NCBI GenBank assembly: GCA_946965045.2 | Contig: OX337239.1 | Span: 2,170,001-2,234,000 of the forward strand | Reading direction: 5' to 3' | Source: Epithemia pelagica | Taxonomy: Eukaryota > Protista > Bacillariophyta | Length of the DNA stretch: 64,000 bases | In this document: piece by piece, positions 39,447-54,220 of the stretch | How positions within the stretch are numbered: the first letter of the stretch is position 1 | Layout of the letters: each line of letters opens with the position of its first letter | Position numbers and translations under genes: made by a program | The notes under the pieces: generated by a model | The model's input: only the letters and a program-made list of their open reading frames with translations | Databases searched by the model: none | Told to the model about the DNA's origin: nothing

Positions 39447-42400
39447 ATGAAGCTGTCAGCTATTACATTTGTTCTGGCCGCTCTCGGGAACCATCATGTT
39501 GCATATGCTAGCAATCCAAAGAAGCATGGAGAGTATCGACAGCAAGATTTCTCCCAATCTCAGCGACAAGATATGGAGCAACTTCCAACGACGCAACTTG
39601 ATTCTTCCAGCGCACACGAGGGTGGCAACGAAGATGATGCCCAGTTTTGGGACCGCTTTCTCCAGGACTTCAATATCAACGGATACATAAAAAACAAACA
39701 GCCAGACCCCTGGAGCAAGAAAATGAGTCTAAGTTTCAGTCCAGCCCCTACCGATCCACCCACTGAGCCTCCTAGTAGAAATCCGAGTGAATCACCAAGC
39801 GAACGTCCAAGCGCAAGCCCAAGTGAACCACCGAGTGAGGCTCCATCAGAAGCTCCATCCAATCCACCCACGAACTTTCCCTGTGACGTTAATGTAACGA
39901 CGATTTGTGAGGACATTGATGGAACTCTTTGCGAAGACATCCCCCCGCCAAATGGAACCTGTTTTAGCGTTGCGAACCAAGCCATTGAAGTTCTCTCCTT
40001 CACGTACCTACCCGGCAATGACTGTTCCATGAGCCGTAATCAGCAATATGGAATAGCACAGTGCCAGGATCTTGCGGCGAATATTCCTGATGTCCCAGTC
40101 GAGCTCATCTGTGAGGATAATCTAGGAAACGGTATGAACGTTACTGAACAGAATATCACAGTGGATGGAGAAACGTTGTTTACAGTCACTCCGGTTGGTG
40201 GTGGGTCATTTCCTGAAGCTATCAACTGTACCATTAACAACGAAATCAATGGCCAGCCTCTTCAGTGGAACTTCATCAATACATCTGGCGCAGAACTGAA
40301 TCTGAAGGAAGCCTATGGTGCCCTTCAATTGGAATCGTGTGACGATCAAGTTTGTCTTCAAGAGGTATTTTTCCGAAGTTTCCTCGACAACATTGGAGGT
40401 GCCGATATGAACGTGACATTGGTCAACATTACCATTCCTGGACAAGATCCATATGACTTAGCCTTTTTGGTGGACAATCCGTTGGTCCCTGGAGAGCAGT
40501 TTACAGTTGTGGATATTGTGTTTTTGGATTACTGCGAGACGCAGAATATTTCGTATTGTGTCGATGTTGAGGCGGATCCACCTGTTGGAGCACCATGCTT
40601 TGATGAAGACAAGGTTGAGTTTCCAATTCTTGTTTCATGCTCTATTGAGCTCAATCTTACATGTGTCGAAGAGTCGAGTGGTTTGCCATGTGACGAAATC
40701 CCTGTAATTTCCAACCCTCAATGTGAATGTCCAGAAGGATGTTCTACCGAGTTGGAGTTTCGTTTCACGGGTAACGCTTGTGTTGACGATCCTACTTACG
40801 ACTGCACCTTTGATGGGACGATTAATCAGAGCGGTGGAACCGTTAGTGTGGCGACAGACCCGAACTTTGTAGCTGGCAGTGTTCTTTTCAACGAAATTGT
40901 TGGACCTGGCGGCAGGGTGTCCGTCTTCAACAACCTTCTTTGCATTGAAGATACATTGTACATCAATGTTTTTACAACAACGGGAAATCAGCGGATGACG
41001 CTACGAACAGATTGTACCAGTGGAGCAGGTCTCCCCTTGGCGCAACCTGTTGGGGCTCTAGACTTTGTTGGATTCACGTGTGATAACACTCTTGAAATTG
41101 ATTGCTTCTCGAATGTTGTCCTGGATACTTGTGCCATCAACCAAGGAACAGATGACCTTTTCTTGACGCTCTTCACAGTTGGAATCAGAGGCCAAGAAGC
41201 TTTCAATCTTTTGAATCCGCCTGTGTTGCTGGAACCTGGCGACGCAACGTGTGAGCAAGCCATCACAGAAATTTTCAAGTGTAACGACACTGAGTATGTA
41301 GTCGAGGCCATTGTTGAGGCTAACGATACCTCGGCTACGGGATGTGAGGATACCGCGCTACTTCCTTTTACTATTGCATCAGGTACTGTGGCTCCAAGTT
41401 CAAGTCCCAGTGACCAACCGACCGAAGTTCCATCTGAAGCTCCATCCATTCCACCCACGAACTTTCCCTGTGACGTTAATGTAACGACGATTTGTGAGGA
41501 CATTGATGGAACTCTTTGCGAAGACATCCCCCCGCCAAATGGAACCTGTTTTAGCGTTGCGAACCAAGCCATTGAAGTTCTCTCCTTCACGTACCTACCC
41601 GGCAATGACTGTTCCATGAGCCGTAATCAGCAATATGGAATAGCACAGTGCCAGGATCTTGCGGCGAATCTTCCTGATGTCCCAGTCGAGCTCATCTGTG
41701 AGGATAATCTAGGAAACGGTATGAACGTTACTGAACAGAATATCACAGTGGATGGAGAAACGTTGTTTACAGTCACTCCGGTTGGTGGTGGGTCATTTCC
41801 TGAAGCTATCAACTGTACCATTAACAACGAAATCAATGGCCAGCCTCTTCAGTGGAACTTCATCAATACATCTGGCGCAGAACTGAATCTGAAGGAAGCC
41901 TATGGTGCCCTTCAATTGGAATCGTGTGACGATCAAGTTTGTCTTCAAGAGGTATTTTTCCGAAGTTTCCTCGACAACATTGGAGGTGCCGATATGAACG
42001 TGACATTGGTCAACATTACCATTCCTGGACAAGATCCATATGACTTAGCCTTTTTGGTGGACAATCCGTTGGTCCCTGGAGAGCAGTTTACAGTTGTGGA
42101 TATTGTGTTTTTGGATTACTGCGAGACGCAGAATATTTCGTATTGTGTCGATGTTGAGGCGGATCCACCTGTTGGAGCACCATGCTTTGATGAAGACAAG
42201 GTTGAGTTTCCAATTCTTGTTTCATGCTCTATTGAGCTCAATCTTACATGTGTCGAAGAGTCGAGTGGTTTGCCATGTGACGAAATCCCTGTAATTTCCA
42301 ACCCTCAATGTGAATGTCCAGAAGGATGTTCTACCGAGTTGGAGTTTCGTTTCACGGGTAACGCTTGTGTTGACGATCCTACTTACGACTGCAGTACACA

Positions 42401-45400
42401 GGGGACGATTGATACGGATGGTGGAACTGTTGTTGTGGCAACAGATCCCACTTTTCAGAATGTTCTTTTCAACCAAGCTGTCACGACAGGTACTCCGATA
42501 TCCGTTGCCAACCCCAGCTGTGTTCCTGATGACTTATATATCAATGTTACGTTTACCGCGGGAAGTCAAAGCATTGTATTGCGTACAGCATGTTCCAGTG
42601 GAGCAGGTCTCCCCTTGGCGCAACCTGTTGGGGCTCTAGACTTTGTTGGATTCACGTGTGATAACACTCTTGAAATTGATTGCTTCTCGAATGTTGTCCT
42701 GGATACTTGTGCCATCAACCAAGGAACAGATGACCTTTTCTTGACGCTCTTCACAGTTGGAATCAGAGGCCAAGAAGTTTTCAATCTTTTGAATCCGCCT
42801 TTTTTGCTGGAACCCGGCGACGCAACGTGTGAGCAAGCCATCACAGAAATTTTCAAGTGTAACGACACTGAGTATGTAGTCGAGGCCATTGTTGAGGCTA
42901 ACGATACCTCGGCTACGGGATGTGAGGACACCGCGCTACTTCCTTTTACTATTGCATCAGGTACTGTGGCTCCAAGTTCAAGTCCCAGTGACCAACCGAC
43001 CGAAGTTCCATCTGAAACTCCATCTGATCAACCAAGCGAACCGCCCTCTGATGTTCCGTCTTTATCTCCCAGTTTAAGTCCAAGTGATCCACCGAGCGAG
43101 GTTCCGTCTGTTTCTCCATCCAATCAACCAAGTGATCCTCCGAGTGAGAGTCCATCGGATGCTCCAACGGCTCCTCCTACCGGGTTTTGTCTTGTTGACG
43201 TTGACATCGTTTGCGATGTAACAAGTGATGGAACAATTACCTGTGCAGGACTTACACCTCCTTCCACCGCACGTTGTTCCAATGGAGAGAGAATCGATAC
43301 AGTGTCATTCAAGTATCTTGGGGCATCTGGCTCGACTTGTCAAGACAGTCGAAATCAACAAGAGGCGAATTGTGAGTCTGTCTGCGTTGATTTTGGACTT
43401 CTTGTGGATACACCTGTCGATATTGAATGCTTTGACTTGATTGAGACCCCTTTGATTGTTGAACCTACATCGGTTCTTCCTGGAGAGATTTTCACCGTCA
43501 CTGAGAATCCGTCGAGTGGAGGACCACCTTTGATGCAAAAGATCAATTGTACAATTTCCTCAGGTGGAACAATTCTGCAGTACAATGTGATGGACGTGTC
43601 GGGTGACGTTGAGTTGGACCTACAAGAACAATACGGTGGTTTGGAACTTGAGAAATGTGATGGACTGACATGCTTCCAAATTGTCGACCTCGTGACTACA
43701 ATTAACAATACTGGGGCGATTGAAATGAACATTACAGTTGCGGATGAAACACTGCTTGGCGTCACCACAAGCGTTCTCGCTAATCTTACTGGTCCATGGG
43801 GTGATAATCCGTATCTCCTACAACCTGGAGAAAGTGCCGAGCTTCAAAGAGATGATTTGGTTGTTGATCTTTGTGAAACAGGAGACTTTGTGTATCAGCT
43901 CGACGCCGAGGCTGACCCACCTAACGGAGTGGAGTGCAATGACACAGATTTGATCACGCTTTCTTTCGCACCACAGTGTATTGTCGACACCAACCTCACA
44001 TGTACCTACCTCGAGACTGGCGGTGACTGTAACTCCATCCCAGATTTCAACTCCCCGGACTGTGATTGTGATGGAAGCTGTGCAACGGAAATGTTGTTCC
44101 GATATGTGCCACGCACATGTGACCAGTCTCCACCAGACAGTGCATTTGCGGTCGAATGTACACAGTTGTTGGACCAAATGCCAACCAATCCAAATATTTT
44201 GGTTGTCTTCAACGCAACGTTGGCTTATTACGAAGGCACCAATGTCACCTCAGAAACAAATATTTTCTTACGTGCACCGGATGGCGGTTGCATTGCCGAG
44301 CCTGTGAACGTGTTGATCCAAAACGAGATCGGAGTTCCGGCACAGGTGTTCACACTGACACCAGGCTGCAGCAACAACGATGAACGGTCAATTGGATTGA
44401 CAGATAGCTACGCGTCTTTTGATTTTTTCGGTTTCACCTGCCAAAACAGTCCTCCTCAAAACTGTTTCACGGACATTGAGTTTGAGCAATGCGCCATCAA
44501 CAATGGTGTGATCAATCTCACTCTGACCCAGCTCGATTTGACGTTTGAAGGTTCCGTGAATAACCTTCTCGATGATCCAACTGTAGTGCGTGATCTCGAA
44601 CCAGGACAAGCCACCTGTGCAAGTCCAGTCGGCTATGAGATTTATCTGTGTGACGGAGGAACATACACGGCCAATGGGTTCGTGGAAGCGAACGATACAT
44701 CAGGTAGCACCTGTTTTGGAGATGCTGAACTTACCAATATCGATCCCAATCGTCCGACCTTCCCACCAACGCTCTTCCCAACAGAAGTTCCCAGTCCCAC
44801 TCCGTCCATGGCTCCGTCAATGGTTCCCTCTACGTCGCCCACTGAGAATTGTGACTTGGTCATTGACTTGAACTGTACAGGATGTGATATCAACGTGACG
44901 AATCTTCCTAATTGTACCGATCGGCCGTTTTTGGTTGGAATGCTTTTCCGAGGAGGCGACTGTTCCGAGAACAACTTTACACAACCAATTGACCGAGTGA
45001 CATGTGGCGATTTCCCTCAGAATGGAGAAGTTCCCAAACTTGGAAGTAACGAAACCGTATTCATCAGAGCCAACGCAGATCCGAAAGACGAGATCGGCGG
45101 CACTGGAGGAGATGACGAAACATTGCTTTTTGAGGGCCTGGTGACTGAGGGAAGTGTGTACTTTCTTTACGATAATGGTGAAGATATGCCTGCGGACACA
45201 CAGATCCGAATTTATCCAGCAGAGGGTCCACAAAACCCTTCAACCATTTTACAAGATGTTCGCTTCCATGCGTCTTGTTCACAACCTCTTTTGTTGAAGA
45301 ATGTGTTTGGATCTCATCAGTTGGTCCAGTTTGAGAATGTTCCGCAAGGCAATGTGTCTTGCTTTGCAAGTATCACTTCCGACTACAGAATTACAATTCC

Positions 45401-45761
45401 CATCAATGGCCTTCCGACGGGAGATGATGTCCTGGAGATTACTCGTGCAACGATTCGTACCAACTACACAAATCCTGCCTTTACCTTTCTTACTTGTTTG
45501 GAGGGTCAAGTGATTTGTTCGGAAGAGGTGGCACAGAATATTAGCAATCCGACGTGCAACACAAGTACATTGGAAGTTGAGTTTGAAACAACATTGAGCC
45601 TGAACGAGGCACAAGGCTATTCCCAAGAGATTAATATTTTCGCGCGAGGATTGACAACGGGACAACGATGCCGAGGAAGAGGTGTTGAAGAGTTCTGTGC
45701 TCCGTTGAACGATCCTGTTTGTCAAGGACAAGACGGCGGTGGCGGAGGTTCACCTCTCTAA
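39447..45761 (+). CDS. Giant secreted Cys-rich modular glycoprotein A (2104 aa), putative adhesin/extracellular-matrix protein
   Basis: Signal peptide, Pro/Ser/Thr linkers (PSxxPS), tandem ~529-aa Cys-rich modules and many NxS/T sequons. No TM or evident GPI tail. Confidence 0.85.
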   Translation: MKLSAITFVLAALGNHHVAYASNPKKHGEYRQQDFSQSQRQDMEQLPTTQLDSSSAHEGGNEDDAQFWDRFLQDFNINGYIKNKQPDPWSKKMSLSFSPAPTDPPTEPPSRNPSESPSERPSASPSEPPSEAPSEAPSNPPTNFPCDVNVTTICEDIDGTLCEDIPPPNGTCFSVANQAIEVLSFTYLPGNDCSMSRNQQYGIAQCQDLAANIPDVPVELICEDNLGNGMNVTEQNITVDGETLFTVTPVGGGSFPEAINCTINNEINGQPLQWNFINTSGAELNLKEAYGALQLESCDDQVCLQEVFFRSFLDNIGGADMNVTLVNITIPGQDPYDLAFLVDNPLVPGEQFTVVDIVFLDYCETQNISYCVDVEADPPVGAPCFDEDKVEFPILVSCSIELNLTCVEESSGLPCDEIPVISNPQCECPEGCSTELEFRFTGNACVDDPTYDCTFDGTINQSGGTVSVATDPNFVAGSVLFNEIVGPGGRVSVFNNLLCIEDTLYINVFTTTGNQRMTLRTDCTSGAGLPLAQPVGALDFVGFTCDNTLEIDCFSNVVLDTCAINQGTDDLFLTLFTVGIRGQEAFNLLNPPVLLEPGDATCEQAITEIFKCNDTEYVVEAIVEANDTSATGCEDTALLPFTIASGTVAPSSSPSDQPTEVPSEAPSIPPTNFPCDVNVTTICEDIDGTLCEDIPPPNGTCFSVANQAIEVLSFTYLPGNDCSMSRNQQYGIAQCQDLAANLPDVPVELICEDNLGNGMNVTEQNITVDGETLFTVTPVGGGSFPEAINCTINNEINGQPLQWNFINTSGAELNLKEAYGALQLESCDDQVCLQEVFFRSFLDNIGGADMNVTLVNITIPGQDPYDLAFLVDNPLVPGEQFTVVDIVFLDYCETQNISYCVDVEADPPVGAPCFDEDKVEFPILVSCSIELNLTCVEESSGLPCDEIPVISNPQCECPEGCSTELEFRFTGNACVDDPTYDCSTQGTIDTDGGTVVVATDPTFQNVLFNQAVTTGTPISVANPSCVPDDLYINVTFTAGSQSIVLRTACSSGAGLPLAQPVGALDFVGFTCDNTLEIDCFSNVVLDTCAINQGTDDLFLTLFTVGIRGQEVFNLLNPPFLLEPGDATCEQAITEIFKCNDTEYVVEAIVEANDTSATGCEDTALLPFTIASGTVAPSSSPSDQPTEVPSETPSDQPSEPPSDVPSLSPSLSPSDPPSEVPSVSPSNQPSDPPSESPSDAPTAPPTGFCLVDVDIVCDVTSDGTITCAGLTPPSTARCSNGERIDTVSFKYLGASGSTCQDSRNQQEANCESVCVDFGLLVDTPVDIECFDLIETPLIVEPTSVLPGEIFTVTENPSSGGPPLMQKINCTISSGGTILQYNVMDVSGDVELDLQEQYGGLELEKCDGLTCFQIVDLVTTINNTGAIEMNITVADETLLGVTTSVLANLTGPWGDNPYLLQPGESAELQRDDLVVDLCETGDFVYQLDAEADPPNGVECNDTDLITLSFAPQCIVDTNLTCTYLETGGDCNSIPDFNSPDCDCDGSCATEMLFRYVPRTCDQSPPDSAFAVECTQLLDQMPTNPNILVVFNATLAYYEGTNVTSETNIFLRAPDGGCIAEPVNVLIQNEIGVPAQVFTLTPGCSNNDERSIGLTDSYASFDFFGFTCQNSPPQNCFTDIEFEQCAINNGVINLTLTQLDLTFEGSVNNLLDDPTVVRDLEPGQATCASPVGYEIYLCDGGTYTANGFVEANDTSGSTCFGDAELTNIDPNRPTFPPTLFPTEVPSPTPSMAPSMVPSTSPTENCDLVIDLNCTGCDINVTNLPNCTDRPFLVGMLFRGGDCSENNFTQPIDRVTCGDFPQNGEVPKLGSNETVFIRANADPKDEIGGTGGDDETLLFEGLVTEGSVYFLYDNGEDMPADTQIRIYPAEGPQNPSTILQDVRFHASCSQPLLLKNVFGSHQLVQFENVPQGNVSCFASITSDYRITIPINGLPTGDDVLEITRATIRTNYTNPAFTFLTCLEGQVICSEEVAQNISNPTCNTSTLEVEFETTLSLNEAQGYSQEINIFARGLTTGQRCRGRGVEEFCAPLNDPVCQGQDGGGGGSPL
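39843..43018 (+). repeat. Two tandem ~1.58-kb intragenic modules in gene A
   Basis: Offset 1587 before and 1578 after a divergent window. The shadow ORFs of the two copies are identical or nearly so. Confidence 0.95.
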
Positions 45762-47284: not shown

Positions 47285-50200
47285 ATGAGGGTGACAGTCG
47301 TTGTTGTTGGTTGGTTGCTGACGAATGCGTTCGCAAGCGCCATCGAATCAAGCCATAGTGATGGACCGGAAGGACATGGACCAGAACAACCTGGGGAAGA
47401 CGATGAAAAGTTCTGGGAGCGATACCTTGGTACTTTTGATTTCAAGCAATTCAAGTCTCCCTGGGAAAAGAAAATGAGTCTCAGTATGAGCGAAGCCCCG
47501 ACCACGCCTCCCAGCGATCGTCCGAGTAACAACCCCAGCAGTCTTCCAACCACTTCGCCAAGTACATCTCCGAGTGAAACACCGACGGATGAGCCAAGTC
47601 AATCGCCATCCACTTCACCAAGCGCGTCACCTTCGACTTCACCAAGTGATTCACCTAGTGAAACTCCTACCGAAGTCCCAAGCAACTCTCCATCTGCCTC
47701 ACCAAGTGAATCTCCGACAAACACGCCCAGTGAAAGTCCCAGTTCATCACCAAGTGTGCCTCCAACCCTTACTCCAAGTCTATCCCCCAGTGATCAGCCG
47801 TCTAGTCGGCCTACGAACTTTGCTTGTGGCGTCAATGTTACAACGATTTGTGAGGACTTTGAAGAAACCCGTTGTGAAGACATTCCACCACCCGATGGAA
47901 CCTGTTTCAGTGTTGGAAACCAAGCTATTGAAGTACTCTCCTTCACCTATCTACCGGGCAACGACTGTTCAACAAGTCGCAACCAGCAGTACGAAACATC
48001 ACAATGCGAGGATGTAGGTACGTTGGTGGATGAACCTGTCGACTTGATGTGTGTTGACGTAGAAAACACTGTCCTGATGACGGTGACGGAACAGAATATC
48101 ACGGTTGACGGCGAAGTGTTGTTCACTGTGATGCCCATGGGAACGGGACCTAGAGAGTTTCCGGATGCCATTAACTGTACCATTGTCTTGGCGTCGACCG
48201 GGGAGCCCCTTCAATGGAACGTCATTGATACATCCGGTAGATCAGAGTTGAATCTCAAGGAGACATACGGCGCGATGCAATTGGAGTCTTGTGATGATCA
48301 AGTTTGTATCCAAGAAGTCTTTTTTCGAAGCTTCCTTGACAATATTGGAAGTGCCAACATGAACGTTACACTGGTCAACATTACTATTCCTGGACAAGAT
48401 CCATACGACTTGGCCTTTTTGGTGGACAATCCGTTGGCCCCAGGAGAACAGTTTACAGTTGTGGATATTATCTTTTTGGATTATTGTGAGACGCAGAATA
48501 TTTCTTATTGTGTCGATGTTCAGGCGGATCCTCCTGTGGGCGAACCATGCTTTGACGAAGACAAGGTTGAGTTCCCTATCCTTGTTGAATGTGCCATTGA
48601 GCTTAACCTTACATGTGTCGAAGAATCAAGTGGACTGGCATGTGACCAAATCCCTCCTATTTCCAATCCTCAGTGTGAATGTCGAGAAGGATGTTCCACA
48701 GAGCTACAGTTTCGTTTTACGGCCGCATCATGCGGAGATGATCGTGAAGGTTTCACATGCGAACAAGACGGAACAATGCATGAGGCCGGAGGATCCCTAC
48801 TTGTGTTTATTGATGCCGATGCACAAACAGTCCTATACAATGAATCTATTGTCCCAGATACTCCAATTGTAATCTTCGACTCTATGGAGTGTCTCCCCGA
48901 TATGCTGTATCTCCTTATATTCACTGACACGGGACGGCAGCGCATTGCCCTCAATACTGGATGTCAGACTGGTAGTGGTATTATTCTTGCAGAGGCGGTT
49001 GGTGCGTTGAATTTCGTTGGATATGCATGCGACAACAGTCCGACGGTCAAATGTTATTCCAATGTGGCTGTTGATACATGTGCCATCAACCAAGGAACGG
49101 ACGACCTTTTCTTGACTCTCTTTACTGTTGGAATTGTGGGGCAGTCGACGTTTAACTTGCTTGGAGAAGAGCCCGTTTTGTTGCAACCTGGAGAAGCCAC
49201 CTGTGATGATGTATCCACGGAAATTTACAAATGCAATGAAACGTTATATACTGTGGTTGCTCGGGTTGAAGCTAACGAAACATCGAACATCGGATGTGAG
49301 GACGAGGAGTCAATTCAGTTCTTTATATCTGAAGACACCCTGGTCCCGAGTTCGTCCCCAAGTGAACCCCCGACGTCGGTTCCAAGTGATGAACCCAGTC
49401 TTTCCCCAAGTGAACCTCCTTCATTGTCCCCCAGTGACCCTCCTTCACTGTCCCCCAGTACCTCTCCAAGTGAACCTCCCACCCTTTTGCCGAGTTCACC
49501 ACCAAGTGACGTTCCCTCAACTCCACCCACAAATTTGCCTTGTGACGTCAACGTAACAGTTATTTGTGAAGACATTTTGGGAAGGAACTGTGAGGACATT
49601 CCTTCGCCAAATGGAACGTGTTTCACTAACTCAAATCGTGCTATCGAGGTTCTTTCATTCACTTATGTGCCATTCGGTGATTGCTCTACAAGTCGTAACC
49701 AGCAATATGACACTTCGGAATGTCAAGATCTAGCCACATTGGTGGATGAACCGGTGAACATGGTTTGTGTTGGGGCTGGCGACACGCCCATGGTTGTTAC
49801 CGAGCAGAATATCACCGTAGACGGAGAAACGCTTTTCACGGTCTCACGTCCAGACAATAGTCCGTTCCCGTCGTCTATCAATTGTACGATCGAACTGGAG
49901 TCGACCGGGGAGCCCCTTCAATGGAACGTCATTGGTACGACACCATCTACAGAGCTCAATCTCAAGGAGACGTATGGAGCCATGCAATTGGAGTCATGCG
50001 ATGACCAGGTTTGTCTCCAACAGGTATTCTTCCGCAATTTCCTTGATAATATTGGAGGTGCCGACATGAATGTGACACTGGTCAACATCACCATACCTGG
50101 ACAAGATCCATATGACTTAGCCTTTTTGGTGGACAATCCGTTGGCCCCTGGAGAACAGTTTACAGTTGTGGATATCATCTTTTTGGATTACTGCGAGACG

Positions 50201-53200
50201 CATAACATTTCGTATTGTGTCGATGTTGAGGCGGATCCACCTGTTGGAGCACCATGCTTTGATGAAGACAAGGTCGAGTTTTCCATTGAACCACCCTGTG
50301 GTATTGAGGTCAATCTTACATGTATCGAGGCGGAAACTGGAATTCGTTGCAACCAGATTCCTTCCATAATTAACCCTCAGTGTGAATGCATCGGCCCCGG
50401 TGACTGCTTGCAAGTCATAGAGTTCCGATACACAGCATCACCCTGCCAACCCCCACAAGACCAGGAAGGCTTTACATGCTCGCCACAAGGTGGACCATTG
50501 ACTGAATCCGGAGGGACACTCATTGTTTCGTCTAACCCAGATGGATCCGATGTGATCTTTGAGTCTTTAATTGAACTTGACCGCAGTGTTAGGGTGCAGA
50601 ACGGTACATGTCTCCCCGACACCCTGTACATGGAAGTCATTACGAACGATGGAAGCCAAAATATAGCGCTGACACCTGGTTGCTCAACTGGATCTGGAAT
50701 TGATCTGGCCCTGTCAGCTGGGTCGTTGGATTTTGTTGCATACAGCTGTGCTCAAGGCGACGAGAGAGACTGCTTCGCCGATATTCTCCTCGATACTTGT
50801 GCAATTAACCAGGGGCCAATAAACCTGACGTTGACGAGCTTCACGGTTGGCCTCGAAGGGGAACCACAAACCAGTCTTCTTGATCCGAATGTTGAGATTA
50901 TTTTGCAACCAGGAGATGAATACTGTGGTAATGGCACATCAGAAGTCTTCAAATGCAACGGAACAACATACACGGCAGTCTCTGTTGTTACGGCAAACGA
51001 CACTTCGGCAATTGGTTGCGAGGACGAAGAGATCCTTCAATTCTTTGTTCCTCCTCCGGGAACGCAGGTTCCTAGCTCATCTCCGAGTGATCCTCCAAGC
51101 GACATTCCTAGTACCAGTCCAAGTGAACCACCGACCACTACTCCCTCTTTAGCTCCTAGTACCAATCCCAGTGAATCTCCGAGTGAAGTGCCAACGACAA
51201 GTCCAAGTGATTCACCGAGTGAGTCTCCGAGTGAATCTCCGAGTGAAGTGCCAACGACAAGTCCTTCCCGCTCTCCGTCAACCTCTCCGAGTGAGTCCCC
51301 AAGCGAGTCACCGAGTGCACCTCCCAGCGACCAACCCTCAAGAACGCCGACAACGACGCCCAGTAGCTCCCCAAGCGAACCACCGACATCGAATCCAAGC
51401 GAACCACCAACTGAACTCCCGAGTGACGTTCCAAGTGAACCCCCGAGTCGTTCCCCGTCCACTTCTCCAAGTGAAAACCCCAGTGCTCCTCCCAGCAATT
51501 CTCCAAGTGAAAACCCCAGTGCTCCTCCCAGCAATACACCAAGCACTACCCCCACCGATGTTCCGTCGTTGTCACCAAGTGATCCTCCGAGTCAGACTCC
51601 ATCGGATGTTCCATCGTCTCCTCCTACCGGGGTTTGTCTTGTTGACGTTGACATCGTTTGCGATGTAACAAGTGATGGAACAATTACCTGTGCAGGACTT
51701 ACACCTCCTTCCACCGCACGTTGTTCCAATGGAGAGAGAATCGATACAGTGTCATTCAAGTATCTTGGGGCATCTGGCTCGACTTGTCAAGACAGTCGAA
51801 ATCAACAAGAGGCGGATTGTGAGTCTGTCTGCGTTGATTTTGGACTTCTTGTGGATACACCTGTCGATATTGAATGCTTTGACTTGATTGAGACCCCTTT
51901 GTTTGTTGAACCAACAACGGTCCTTCCTGGAGAGATCTTTACCGTCACTGGAGACCCGTCGGGTGGAGGACCACCTTTGATGCAAAAGATCAATTGTACA
52001 ATTTCATCCGGGGGAAACATTCTGCAGTACAATGTGATGGACGTGTCGGGTAACGTTGAGTTGGATCTACAAGAACAATACGGTGGTTTGGAACTTGAGA
52101 AATGCGATGGACTGACGTGCTTCCAAACTGTCGACCTCGTGACTACAATTAACAATACTGGGGCGATTGAAATGAACATTACAGTTGCGGATGAAACACT
52201 GCTTGGCGTCACCACAAGCGTTCTCGCTAATCTTACTGGTCCATGGGGTGATAATCCGTATCTCCTACAACCTGGAGAAAGTGCCGAGCTTCAAAGAGAT
52301 GATTTGGTCGTTGATCTTTGTGAAACAGGAGACTTTGTGTATCAGCTCGACGCCGAGGCCGACCCTCCTAACGGAGTGGAGTGCAATGACACAGATTTGA
52401 TCACGCTTTCTTTCGCACCACAGTGTATTGTCGACACCAACCTTACATGTACCTACCTCGAGACTGGCGGTGACTGTAACTCCATCCCAGATTTCAACTC
52501 CCCGGACTGTGATTGTGATGGAAGCTGTGCAACGGAAATGTTGTTCCGATATGTTCCACGCACCTGTGACCAGTCTCCACCAGACAGTGCATTTGCGGTC
52601 GAATGTACACAGTTGTTGGACCAAATGCCGACCAATCCAAATATTTTGGTTGTCTTCGACGCAACGACGGCTTATTACGAAGGCACCAACGTCACCTCAG
52701 AAACAAACATTGTCTTACGTGCACCGGATGGCGGTTGCATTGCCGAGCCTGTGAACGTGTTGATCCAGAACGAGATCGGAGTTCCGGCACAGGTGTTCAC
52801 ACTGACACCAGGCTGCAGTAACAACGATGAACGGTCAATTGGGTTGACAGACAGCTACGCGTCTTTTGACTTTTTCGGTTTCACCTGTCAAAACAGTCCT
52901 CCTCAAAACTGTTTCACGGACATTGAGTTTGAGCAATGCGCCATCAACAATGGTGTCATCAATCTCACTCTGACCCAGCTCGATTTGACGTTTGAAGGTT
53001 CCGTGAATAATCTTCTCGATGATCCAACTGTAGTACGGGATCTCGAATCAGGACAAGCAACCTGTGCAAGTCCAGTCGGCTATGAGATTTATCTGTGTGA
53101 CGGAGGAACATACACGGCCAATGCGTTCGTAGAAGCGAACGATACATCAGGTAGCACCTGTTTTGGAGATGCTGAACTTACCAATATCGATCCCAATCGT

Positions 53201-54220
53201 CCGACCTTCCCACCAACGCTCTTCCCAACAGAAGTTCCCAGCCCCACTCCGTCCATGGCTCCGTCAATGGTTCCCTCTACGTCGCCCACTGAGAATTGTG
53301 ACTTGGTCATTGACTTGAACTGTACAGGATGTGATATCAACGTGACGAATCTTCCTAATTGTACCGATCGACCGTTTTTGGTTGGAATGCTTTTCCGAGG
53401 AGGAGACTGTTCCGAGAACAACTTTACACAACCAATTGACCGAGTGACATGTGGCGATTTCCCTCAGAATGGAGAGGTTCCCAAACTCGGAAGTAATGAA
53501 ACCGTATTCATCAGAGCTAACGCAGATCCGAAAGACGAGATCGGCGGCACTGGAGGAGATGGCGAAACATTGCTTTTTGAGGGCCTGGTGACTGAGGGAA
53601 GTGTGTACTTTCTTTACGATAATGGTGAAGATATGCCTGCGGACACACAGATCCGAATTTATCCAGCAGAGGGTCCACAAAACCCTTCAACCATTCTACA
53701 AGATGTTCGCTTCCATGCGTCTTGTTCACAACCTCTTTTGTTGAAGAATGTGTTTGGATCTCATCAGTTGGTCCAGTTTGAGAATGTTCCGCAAGGCAAT
53801 GTGTCTTGCTTTGCAAGTATCACTTCCGACTACAGAATTACAATTCCCATCAATGGCCTTCCGACGGGAGATGATGTCCTGGAGATTACTCGTGCAACGA
53901 TTCGTACCAACTACACAAATCCTGCCTTTACCTTTCTTACTTGTTTGGAGGGTCAAGTGATTTGTTCGGAAGAGGTGGCACAGAATATTAGCAATCCGAC
54001 GTGCAACACAAGTACATTGGAAGTTGAGTTTGAAACAACATTGAGCCTGAACGAGGCACAAGGCTATTCCCAAGAGATTAATATTTTCGCGCGAGGATTG
54101 ACAACGGGACAACGATGCCGAGGAAGAGGTGTTGAAGAGTTCTGTGCTCCGTTGAACGATCCTGTTTGTCAAGGACAAGGCAGTGGTGGGGGAGGAGGCG
54201 GAGGAGGTTCACCCCTCTAA
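47285..54220 (+). CDS. Giant secreted Cys-rich modular glycoprotein B (2311 aa), tandem paralog of gene A
   Basis: Same architecture as gene A with longer PS-rich linkers. The 3' ~2.6 kb is almost identical to gene A. Confidence 0.85.
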   Translation: MRVTVVVVGWLLTNAFASAIESSHSDGPEGHGPEQPGEDDEKFWERYLGTFDFKQFKSPWEKKMSLSMSEAPTTPPSDRPSNNPSSLPTTSPSTSPSETPTDEPSQSPSTSPSASPSTSPSDSPSETPTEVPSNSPSASPSESPTNTPSESPSSSPSVPPTLTPSLSPSDQPSSRPTNFACGVNVTTICEDFEETRCEDIPPPDGTCFSVGNQAIEVLSFTYLPGNDCSTSRNQQYETSQCEDVGTLVDEPVDLMCVDVENTVLMTVTEQNITVDGEVLFTVMPMGTGPREFPDAINCTIVLASTGEPLQWNVIDTSGRSELNLKETYGAMQLESCDDQVCIQEVFFRSFLDNIGSANMNVTLVNITIPGQDPYDLAFLVDNPLAPGEQFTVVDIIFLDYCETQNISYCVDVQADPPVGEPCFDEDKVEFPILVECAIELNLTCVEESSGLACDQIPPISNPQCECREGCSTELQFRFTAASCGDDREGFTCEQDGTMHEAGGSLLVFIDADAQTVLYNESIVPDTPIVIFDSMECLPDMLYLLIFTDTGRQRIALNTGCQTGSGIILAEAVGALNFVGYACDNSPTVKCYSNVAVDTCAINQGTDDLFLTLFTVGIVGQSTFNLLGEEPVLLQPGEATCDDVSTEIYKCNETLYTVVARVEANETSNIGCEDEESIQFFISEDTLVPSSSPSEPPTSVPSDEPSLSPSEPPSLSPSDPPSLSPSTSPSEPPTLLPSSPPSDVPSTPPTNLPCDVNVTVICEDILGRNCEDIPSPNGTCFTNSNRAIEVLSFTYVPFGDCSTSRNQQYDTSECQDLATLVDEPVNMVCVGAGDTPMVVTEQNITVDGETLFTVSRPDNSPFPSSINCTIELESTGEPLQWNVIGTTPSTELNLKETYGAMQLESCDDQVCLQQVFFRNFLDNIGGADMNVTLVNITIPGQDPYDLAFLVDNPLAPGEQFTVVDIIFLDYCETHNISYCVDVEADPPVGAPCFDEDKVEFSIEPPCGIEVNLTCIEAETGIRCNQIPSIINPQCECIGPGDCLQVIEFRYTASPCQPPQDQEGFTCSPQGGPLTESGGTLIVSSNPDGSDVIFESLIELDRSVRVQNGTCLPDTLYMEVITNDGSQNIALTPGCSTGSGIDLALSAGSLDFVAYSCAQGDERDCFADILLDTCAINQGPINLTLTSFTVGLEGEPQTSLLDPNVEIILQPGDEYCGNGTSEVFKCNGTTYTAVSVVTANDTSAIGCEDEEILQFFVPPPGTQVPSSSPSDPPSDIPSTSPSEPPTTTPSLAPSTNPSESPSEVPTTSPSDSPSESPSESPSEVPTTSPSRSPSTSPSESPSESPSAPPSDQPSRTPTTTPSSSPSEPPTSNPSEPPTELPSDVPSEPPSRSPSTSPSENPSAPPSNSPSENPSAPPSNTPSTTPTDVPSLSPSDPPSQTPSDVPSSPPTGVCLVDVDIVCDVTSDGTITCAGLTPPSTARCSNGERIDTVSFKYLGASGSTCQDSRNQQEADCESVCVDFGLLVDTPVDIECFDLIETPLFVEPTTVLPGEIFTVTGDPSGGGPPLMQKINCTISSGGNILQYNVMDVSGNVELDLQEQYGGLELEKCDGLTCFQTVDLVTTINNTGAIEMNITVADETLLGVTTSVLANLTGPWGDNPYLLQPGESAELQRDDLVVDLCETGDFVYQLDAEADPPNGVECNDTDLITLSFAPQCIVDTNLTCTYLETGGDCNSIPDFNSPDCDCDGSCATEMLFRYVPRTCDQSPPDSAFAVECTQLLDQMPTNPNILVVFDATTAYYEGTNVTSETNIVLRAPDGGCIAEPVNVLIQNEIGVPAQVFTLTPGCSNNDERSIGLTDSYASFDFFGFTCQNSPPQNCFTDIEFEQCAINNGVINLTLTQLDLTFEGSVNNLLDDPTVVRDLESGQATCASPVGYEIYLCDGGTYTANAFVEANDTSGSTCFGDAELTNIDPNRPTFPPTLFPTEVPSPTPSMAPSMVPSTSPTENCDLVIDLNCTGCDINVTNLPNCTDRPFLVGMLFRGGDCSENNFTQPIDRVTCGDFPQNGEVPKLGSNETVFIRANADPKDEIGGTGGDGETLLFEGLVTEGSVYFLYDNGEDMPADTQIRIYPAEGPQNPSTILQDVRFHASCSQPLLLKNVFGSHQLVQFENVPQGNVSCFASITSDYRITIPINGLPTGDDVLEITRATIRTNYTNPAFTFLTCLEGQVICSEEVAQNISNPTCNTSTLEVEFETTLSLNEAQGYSQEINIFARGLTTGQRCRGRGVEEFCAPLNDPVCQGQGSGGGGGGGGSPL
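51618..54180 (+). repeat. Near-identical copy of 43171-45733 (shared C-terminal block of genes A and B)
   Basis: Constant offset 8447 (e.g. shadow ORFs 43225/51672, 45279/53726) with only scattered substitutions. Confidence 0.95.

Follow-up and report, generated by a model that had tools for sequence, protein, structure and literature searches.

The analysed window is a 64,000-nt stretch of the genome of the diatom Epithemia pelagica (assembly GCA_946965045.2, contig OX337239.1, positions 2,170,001 to 2,234,000), and the coordinates below are positions in this window on the forward (+) strand unless another contig is named. The window contains two tandem paralogues, designated genes A and B. 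The subject of this study is a segment of about 210 nt in gene A, termed the cassette, by which two otherwise near-identical modules of the encoded protein differ. Gene A (39447..45761) and gene B (47285..54220) are intact open reading frames encoding proteins of 2104 and 2311 aa, respectively. Both proteins have a signal-peptide-like start, long Pro/Ser/Thr linkers, many N-x-S/T sites and many cysteines, and both consist of three modules of ~500 aa (A1, A2, A3 and B1, B2, B3) and a C-terminal domain. Judging from the signal peptide, the mucin-like Pro/Ser and Pro/Thr linkers, the N-x-S/T sites and the Cys-rich immunoglobulin-like (Ig-like) domains, the protein of gene A is probably secreted and extracellular.

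The Pfam scores of the gene A and gene B proteins with PF24269 (DUF7467) were 220.6 bits (E=7e-66) and 232.9 bits (E=1e-69), respectively, with 6 matching stretches in each protein. Both scores exceed the curated cut-off of the family, 27 bits. Apart from DUF7467, only the PT repeat was found by Pfam in the two proteins. Each module carries two DUF7467 stretches, every one of which precedes an Ig-like sandwich. Module A1 (39882..41369; 496 aa), with its two pairs of DUF7467 and Ig-like sandwich, is followed by A2 (41469..42947; 493 aa) and A3 (43188-44738), and the modules of gene B are located at 47825-49321 (B1), 49541-51043 (B2) and 51635-53185 (B3). The domains between the DUF7467 units were not matched by the CARDB/DUF7507 profile: PF24346 resulted in E=0.11 and 12.9 bits in A3, which is below the cut-off of 27. 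Further signs of DUF7507/CARDB were limited to precomputed matches on the distant relative P0005 and weak ESM Atlas leads. A literature search on DUF7467 found no paper.

The modules A1 and A2 were compared along their whole length. The N-flank identity tract of A1 (39848..40806) differs from its partner at 41435-42393, offset by 1587 nt, at 2 of 959 nt; one difference lies in the linker (39862, N/I) and the other at 40083 (I/L). The C-flank identity tract of A1 (41018..41438) and its partner (42596-43016, offset 1578 nt) differ at 5 of 421 nt, i.e. at 41200, 41223, 41225, 41237 and 41351, and 41439 is the first mismatch beyond the tract. In the linker, the end of the A1 C-flank tract meets the start of the A2 N-flank tract. 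Between the flanks, the cassette of A1 (40807..41017) and that of A2 (42394..42595, 9 nt shorter and inside the DUF7467 match 42333-42650) differ at 91 of 210 aligned positions with a net 9-nt indel, and their amino-acid identity is 53%. Of the 99 differences between A1 and A2, 91 are found inside the 210-nt cassette. The longest identical run of the two modules was 723 nt, compared with a maximum of 213 in 10,000 permutations. The two-breakpoint maximum chi-square scan of A1 vs A2 placed the breakpoints at 40807 and 41017 (chi-square 535). An earlier first-pass annotation of this DNA had described A1 and A2 as near-identical with an abrupt divergence at 40807-41017 vs 42394-42595, and the scan returned the identical coordinates.

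The same annotation had named the equivalent stretch as the most divergent part of the gene B modules, and this was also found here. The amino-acid identity of B1 and B2 was 35% in the cassette (48761..48967 in B1 and 50480..50686 in B2), compared with 73% in the upstream and 51% in the downstream flank. The cassette was the fastest-evolving stretch in every comparison made, those of B1 with B2 and of the modules of Epithemia clementina included. The anchors listed in the annotation, GG, C..D.LY and G.Q...L...C, are all real conserved columns.

The age of the segments was estimated from Nei-Gojobori counts on the codon alignment of the modules. No synonymous differences were present in the 308 codons of the N-flank of A1 and A2, i.e. 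the number of synonymous substitutions per site (dS) is 0, and the dS of the C-flank was 0.03. The proportion of synonymous differences (pS) between the two cassettes was 0.58 with the corresponding dS of about 1.1, and the ratio of non-synonymous to synonymous substitutions (dN/dS) was 0.42. The proportion of non-synonymous differences (pN) was below pS (p=0.0045). In the comparisons of gene A with gene B, the flanks had dS values of 1.3-1.9 and a dN/dS of 0.11; the dS of the cassettes is thus of the same order as that of the gene A vs gene B flanks. With its dS of about 1.1, compared with 0 in the N-flank and 0.03 in the C-flank, the cassette is old and did not arise by rapid amino-acid change following a recent duplication. 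The significantly lower pN than pS indicates that purifying selection dominates the cassette, although it is weaker there than in the flanks. The two flanks were also compared with each other in counting windows, where 2 of 950 nt (39850-40799) and 6 of 420 nt (41020-41439) differed (Fisher p=0.012). The flanks therefore differ in age, and a separate exchange event on each side of the cassette fits better than a single one. The homogenisation of the repeats in the first-pass description applies to A1 and A2 but not in general, as the synonymous sites of B1 and B2 are saturated outside one older patch that the two have in common.

A second protein of gene A, P0007 (2124 aa), is in the 90%-identity cluster of the protein of the window copy (P0001) and is derived from another public contig of 662 kb. 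It presumably represents the other haplotype or another isolate. In the comparison of the four modules A1, A2, A1' and A2' at the protein level, 37 sites distinguished the paralogues in both copies, and 35 of these were located in the cassette. Both cassettes were unchanged between P0001 and P0007, with 0 of 139 residues differing in the two copies compared, although this absence of differences is not significant (P(0)=0.14). Three flank sites were identical in A1 and A2 inside each copy and different between the copies. These are the module positions 86 (NN in P0001, TT in P0007) and 213 (VV and II) upstream of the cassette and 403 (TT and NN) downstream of it. The linker between A1 and A2 resembles the linker upstream of A1 in P0007 and the linker downstream of A2 in the window copy, and the tract ends differ between the two copies. 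The parallel flank changes, the remodelled linker and the unchanged cassettes show that A1 and A2 went on exchanging sequence on either side of the cassette after the copies separated, and that no tract crossed the cassette. In combination with the flank dS values of 0-0.03 vs about 1.1, the parallel changes support the first-pass claim of a scaffold homogenised by concerted evolution with the cassette excluded. The diversifying selection on the cassette, proposed in the same place, is not supported, with a dN/dS of 0.42, a pN below pS and cassettes that are identical in the two gene copies.

The second copy is also relevant to the quality of the assembly. Tandem repeats with identities of 959 and 421 nt are a classic problem of short-read assembly, and the identical flanks could have resulted from a collapse or mis-joining of repeats. 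Such an artefact is, however, extremely improbable: the assembly consists of 23 contigs with a total of 60.5 Mb, all 2104 codons are in an intact reading frame, and the A1-cassette-A2-cassette order recurs on the second public contig. As this contig has its own private differences, it supports the assembly independently. The size and contig number also agree with a 60-Mbp chromosome-level assembly reported for E. pelagica (PMC12377750).

The only close relatives of the gene A protein were three proteins of E. clementina with 49-58% identity. The E. clementina genes ACA910_004571, ACA910_004579 and ACA910_004586 (DUF7467) are similar to gene A in their module architecture, which is M1-M2-M3 or M1-M3 with a C-terminal domain. 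As in E. pelagica, the N-flanks of M1 and M2 are more alike within the species than between the species. In the tree of the N-flanks, A1, A2, B1 and B2 were placed together (support 86/98), and the M1 and M2 modules of E. clementina formed the other group (100/100); such grouping by species is a classic sign of concerted evolution. Unlike in A1 and A2, the similarity of the M1 and M2 modules of E. clementina is 77% in the N-flank and 59% in the C-flank, with neither near-identity nor a sharply bounded island.

In the cassette, 18 quartet sites grouped A1 with A2 and B1 with B2, compared with 5 and 12 sites for the alternative groupings. The identity of the A1 and A2 cassettes, 53%, is higher than their identities to the other M1/M2-type modules, 26-42%, i.e. 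the two are mutual nearest relatives. In the domain search with A2, the nearest match was A1 and the next was B1 at 54%. The possibility that the A2 cassette is the orthologue of the M2-type cassette of B2, left as a relic after A1 had overwritten the flanks of A2, was rejected due to the quartet counts and the identity of 34-37% to B2. The nearest relative of the B2 cassette in the cassette tree was the M2 cassette of E. clementina P0002 (45% identity, weak support). A DNA and protein search of the whole 60.5-Mb genome for a donor copy of the cassette gave only A1, A2, B1, B2, A3 and B3. Fragment-length relatives with further cassette variants were looked for, and none were found.

These results bear on two alternative origins of the island. 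According to the first, one unit was duplicated in tandem very recently, and a diverged donor, since lost or absent from the assembly, then replaced one of the cassettes through a short conversion. The length of the identity tract is exactly that of one repeat period. In a short 33-aa linker, the A1 C-flank tract stops (41438) within about 10 nt of the start of the A2 N-flank tract (41435), as expected of a duplication junction, and E. clementina P0003 and P0004 have a single M1-type module each. Nevertheless, this origin is improbable, as there is no donor in the genome, the A2 domain is nearest to A1 and only then to B1, and the flanks differ in age. Moreover, the two gene copies have both cassettes in common but show later flank exchanges and differ in their linker junctions; the junction is therefore no fixed scar. 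According to the second, a single-module gene had two long-lived alleles that differed in the cassette under balancing selection, and an unequal crossing-over placed them in tandem, which fixed the heterozygote. The capture of balanced alleles by duplication is a known route, and it would explain the one-period identity and the old cassette in one step. However, a dS of about 1.1 would require an extremely old trans-specific polymorphism, the tandem pair is already present in both gene copies and the different flank ages are left unexplained; this origin is considered very improbable.

The AlphaFold model of module A1, which was based on an 11-row alignment, is all beta with a mean predicted local distance difference test score (pLDDT) of 83. 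The cassette, module residues 309-379, corresponds in the model to six strands of the second DUF7467 domain with block pLDDT values of 82-92. Two invariant Cys residues bracket it, the first directly before its start and the second at its end. Eight M1/M2-type modules share the alternation of hydrophobic columns in the cassette as well as its GG, C, G and Q anchors, and 24 of the 32 substitutions between the A1 and A2 cassettes are at residues that are polar in A1. The confidently modelled strands and the conserved hydrophobic periodicity indicate that the cassette is the core of a folded beta-sandwich domain, as predicted by the model, with a changed surface. The mapping of the cassette on an AlphaFold model had been suggested in the first-pass annotation, and the result discards the reading of the cassette as an unstructured loop. 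The term "surface patch" used there was inexact, as the cassette forms the six-strand core of the sandwich and its hydrophobic pattern is conserved. An intron or an alternatively spliced cassette was dropped as well, since neither cassette interrupts the reading frame and the Gly, Cys and Gln columns that are invariant in the family are present in both. According to the model and the conserved columns, A1 and A2 thus carry one domain in two stable, different versions, while the rest of the scaffold is the same.

With the whole module, Foldseek found only generic strings of Ig-like domains, including the extender repeats of bacterial adhesins. With the second DUF7467 domain, the best Z score of VIA-align was 5.1 (7alt_B, root-mean-square deviation 3.3 over 95 residues), and many C2 domains had Z scores of 4.2-5.0; all of these are lower than the noise level of the tool, 7-8. 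The fold matches of the modelled structure are thus generic and point to no function. An adhesin role of the gene A protein is unsupported.

Based on the above, A1 and A2 are best explained as old intragenic duplicates whose flanks have been homogenised by ectopic exchange, with an unconverted island of divergence left between them; we estimate the probability of this explanation at about 75%. A1 and A2 would be old tandem copies of one unit of ~1.59 kb, i.e. a module and its linker, inside gene A. The ectopic exchange, either intragenic gene conversion or unequal crossing-over, keeps both sides of the 210-nt stretch near-identical, while the cassette itself has remained unexchanged for about 1.1 synonymous substitutions per site. 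The edges of the island lie on the two invariant cysteine codons, and the exchange is still active on either side and does not cross it.

Several points weigh against this explanation, or against a role of selection in it. The origin of P0007 may be the other haplotype, another isolate or another assembly, and the sites changed in concert amount to three amino-acid positions. Both the E. clementina genes and the second copy of gene A were compared at the protein level, and the cassette tree, with its 72 columns, is poorly resolved. Regarding selection, the dN/dS and the pN below pS provide no positive evidence for it in the cassette, and with dS near saturation the dN/dS test has little power to show positive selection. 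In addition, a heterology of ~43% with indels can by itself halt the extension of a heteroduplex, i.e. sharp edges need no selection.

The persistence of the island could be achieved in two ways. With the same history of old duplicates and exchanging flanks, the island could be neutral: the least constrained part of the domain would have drifted and gained indels, and the rejection of the heteroduplex by mismatch repair would stop the tracts at its edges. We regard a neutral island as a serious candidate, though at clearly less than even odds. The fastest evolution of the cassette in all comparisons speaks for it, the dN/dS of 0.42 fits relaxed constraint, and the edges are exactly where the family-wide conservation resumes, at the invariant Cys codons. 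The lack of allelic differences in the cassette is in line with it too, within the limits of its significance. On the other hand, the repair of a double-strand break can copy through a short heterology if long stretches of perfect homology lie on either side, and the middle of the first DUF7467 domain, which is equally variable, is fully homogenised between A1 and A2. The survival of the island over a dS of ~1.1 despite frequent exchange would also be unexpected without counter-selection.

A heterology of 210 nt between 959 and 421 nt of near-perfect homology should eventually be co-converted, and for this reason we lean, by a narrow preference, towards the island being maintained by selection for two distinct versions rather than by a mechanical block. 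Both theory and earlier cases describe a peak of divergence between converting duplicates as the expected mark of a selected site (PMC3924837). A more specific and tentative proposal, to which we give a minor share of the probability, is that the two cassettes serve as recognition surfaces with distinct functions in an extracellular protein restricted to Epithemia, and that homogenising conversions are removed by selection.

Other exchange tracts were detected at the locus. The older patch mentioned above (40386..40600) is common to all four modules A1, A2, B1 and B2, with pS values of 0.12-0.4 compared with about 0.6-1.0 elsewhere; the lowest pS was determined between the gene A modules and B2. 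It is overlapped by the repeat family D1 (40291-40590, 41878-42177, 48243-48542 and 49950-50249). The 3' half of gene A, comprising A3 and the C-terminal domain (43127..45748), is 97.4% identical to 51574-54195 of gene B. This 2.6-kb similarity has a dS of about 0.09-0.13 and ends where the coding region ends, whereas synonymous divergence is saturated in the 5' halves of the two genes and the DNA outside the genes is unrelated. From its sequence, the similarity of the 3' halves looks like a conversion tract between the genes limited to the coding sequence. In P0007, a 20-aa B-like insertion is present at the 5' edge of this tract and extends the B-like sequence into the linker.

The Pro/Ser/Thr linkers between the modules (41370-41468, 42948-43187, 49322-49540 and 51044-51634) vary from 33 to ~197 aa. 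They differ between the two copies of gene A and look like sites of unequal exchange; in the E. clementina relatives, linkers of several hundred residues are built of near-perfect repeats. The C-terminal Gly run is GGGGG in gene A (45720-45761) and GSGGGGGGGG in gene B (54170-54220), followed in both by a common SPL stop. The public protein collection did not contain the exact gene B protein, and no full-length homologue of gene B was returned by the word search with which gene A had been found; the public gene model of gene B may be split or begin elsewhere. Other DUF7467 matches in the genome were located at G000:C1:1221434-1221730 (-), G000:C2:1777750-1778103 (-), G000:C13:236530-236805 (-) and G000:C2:6238294-6238503 (-). 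One of them is in a 2921-aa open frame on contig 1, which may encode another giant protein of the family.

The island was compared with known systems. In exon 5 of the human red/green opsin genes and in RHCE/RHD (PMC3924837), similarly to gene A, homogenised flanks surround a short and sharply bounded divergent stretch, and the exchange is active. Those duplicates are separate genes, whereas A1 and A2 are modules within one reading frame. The divergent stretches of opsin and RHCE/RHD cover a few known functional sites, whereas the island of gene A is a structural core of 70 residues. The adhesin repeats of bacteria and fungi share with gene A the tandem Ig-like modules, the low-complexity linkers and the near-identical DNA of neighbouring repeats, and adhesin extender repeats are among the structural matches of the gene A module. 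However, adhesin repeats are usually homogenised throughout, compared with two recently homogenised modules and one excluded segment in gene A. The programmed diversification of cassettes, by diversity-generating retroelements or by silent-cassette antigenic variation, likewise produces a bounded variable segment in a constant scaffold. Unlike in those systems, no template or donor copy is present in the 60.5-Mb genome, the cassettes are the same in two gene copies, and the divergence affects synonymous and non-synonymous sites alike.

The island of gene A adds a new case, from an uncharacterised protein family of diatoms, to an evolutionary pattern that is already known, and nothing in it departs from known mechanisms. 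It is an unusually clean island of divergence between sequences that are still exchanging, with base-precise breakpoints within a single diatom gene; to our knowledge, gene conversion has been little described in diatoms. If the island is neutral, it would be a textbook case of heterology limiting conversion tracts. If it is selected, it would mark the part of the DUF7467 domain that carries specificity and would provide two natural variants on an identical scaffold. If the cassettes are indeed distinct recognition surfaces, gene A would present a single domain undergoing neofunctionalisation while intragenic gene conversion continues, and would give a handle on what DUF7467 binds.

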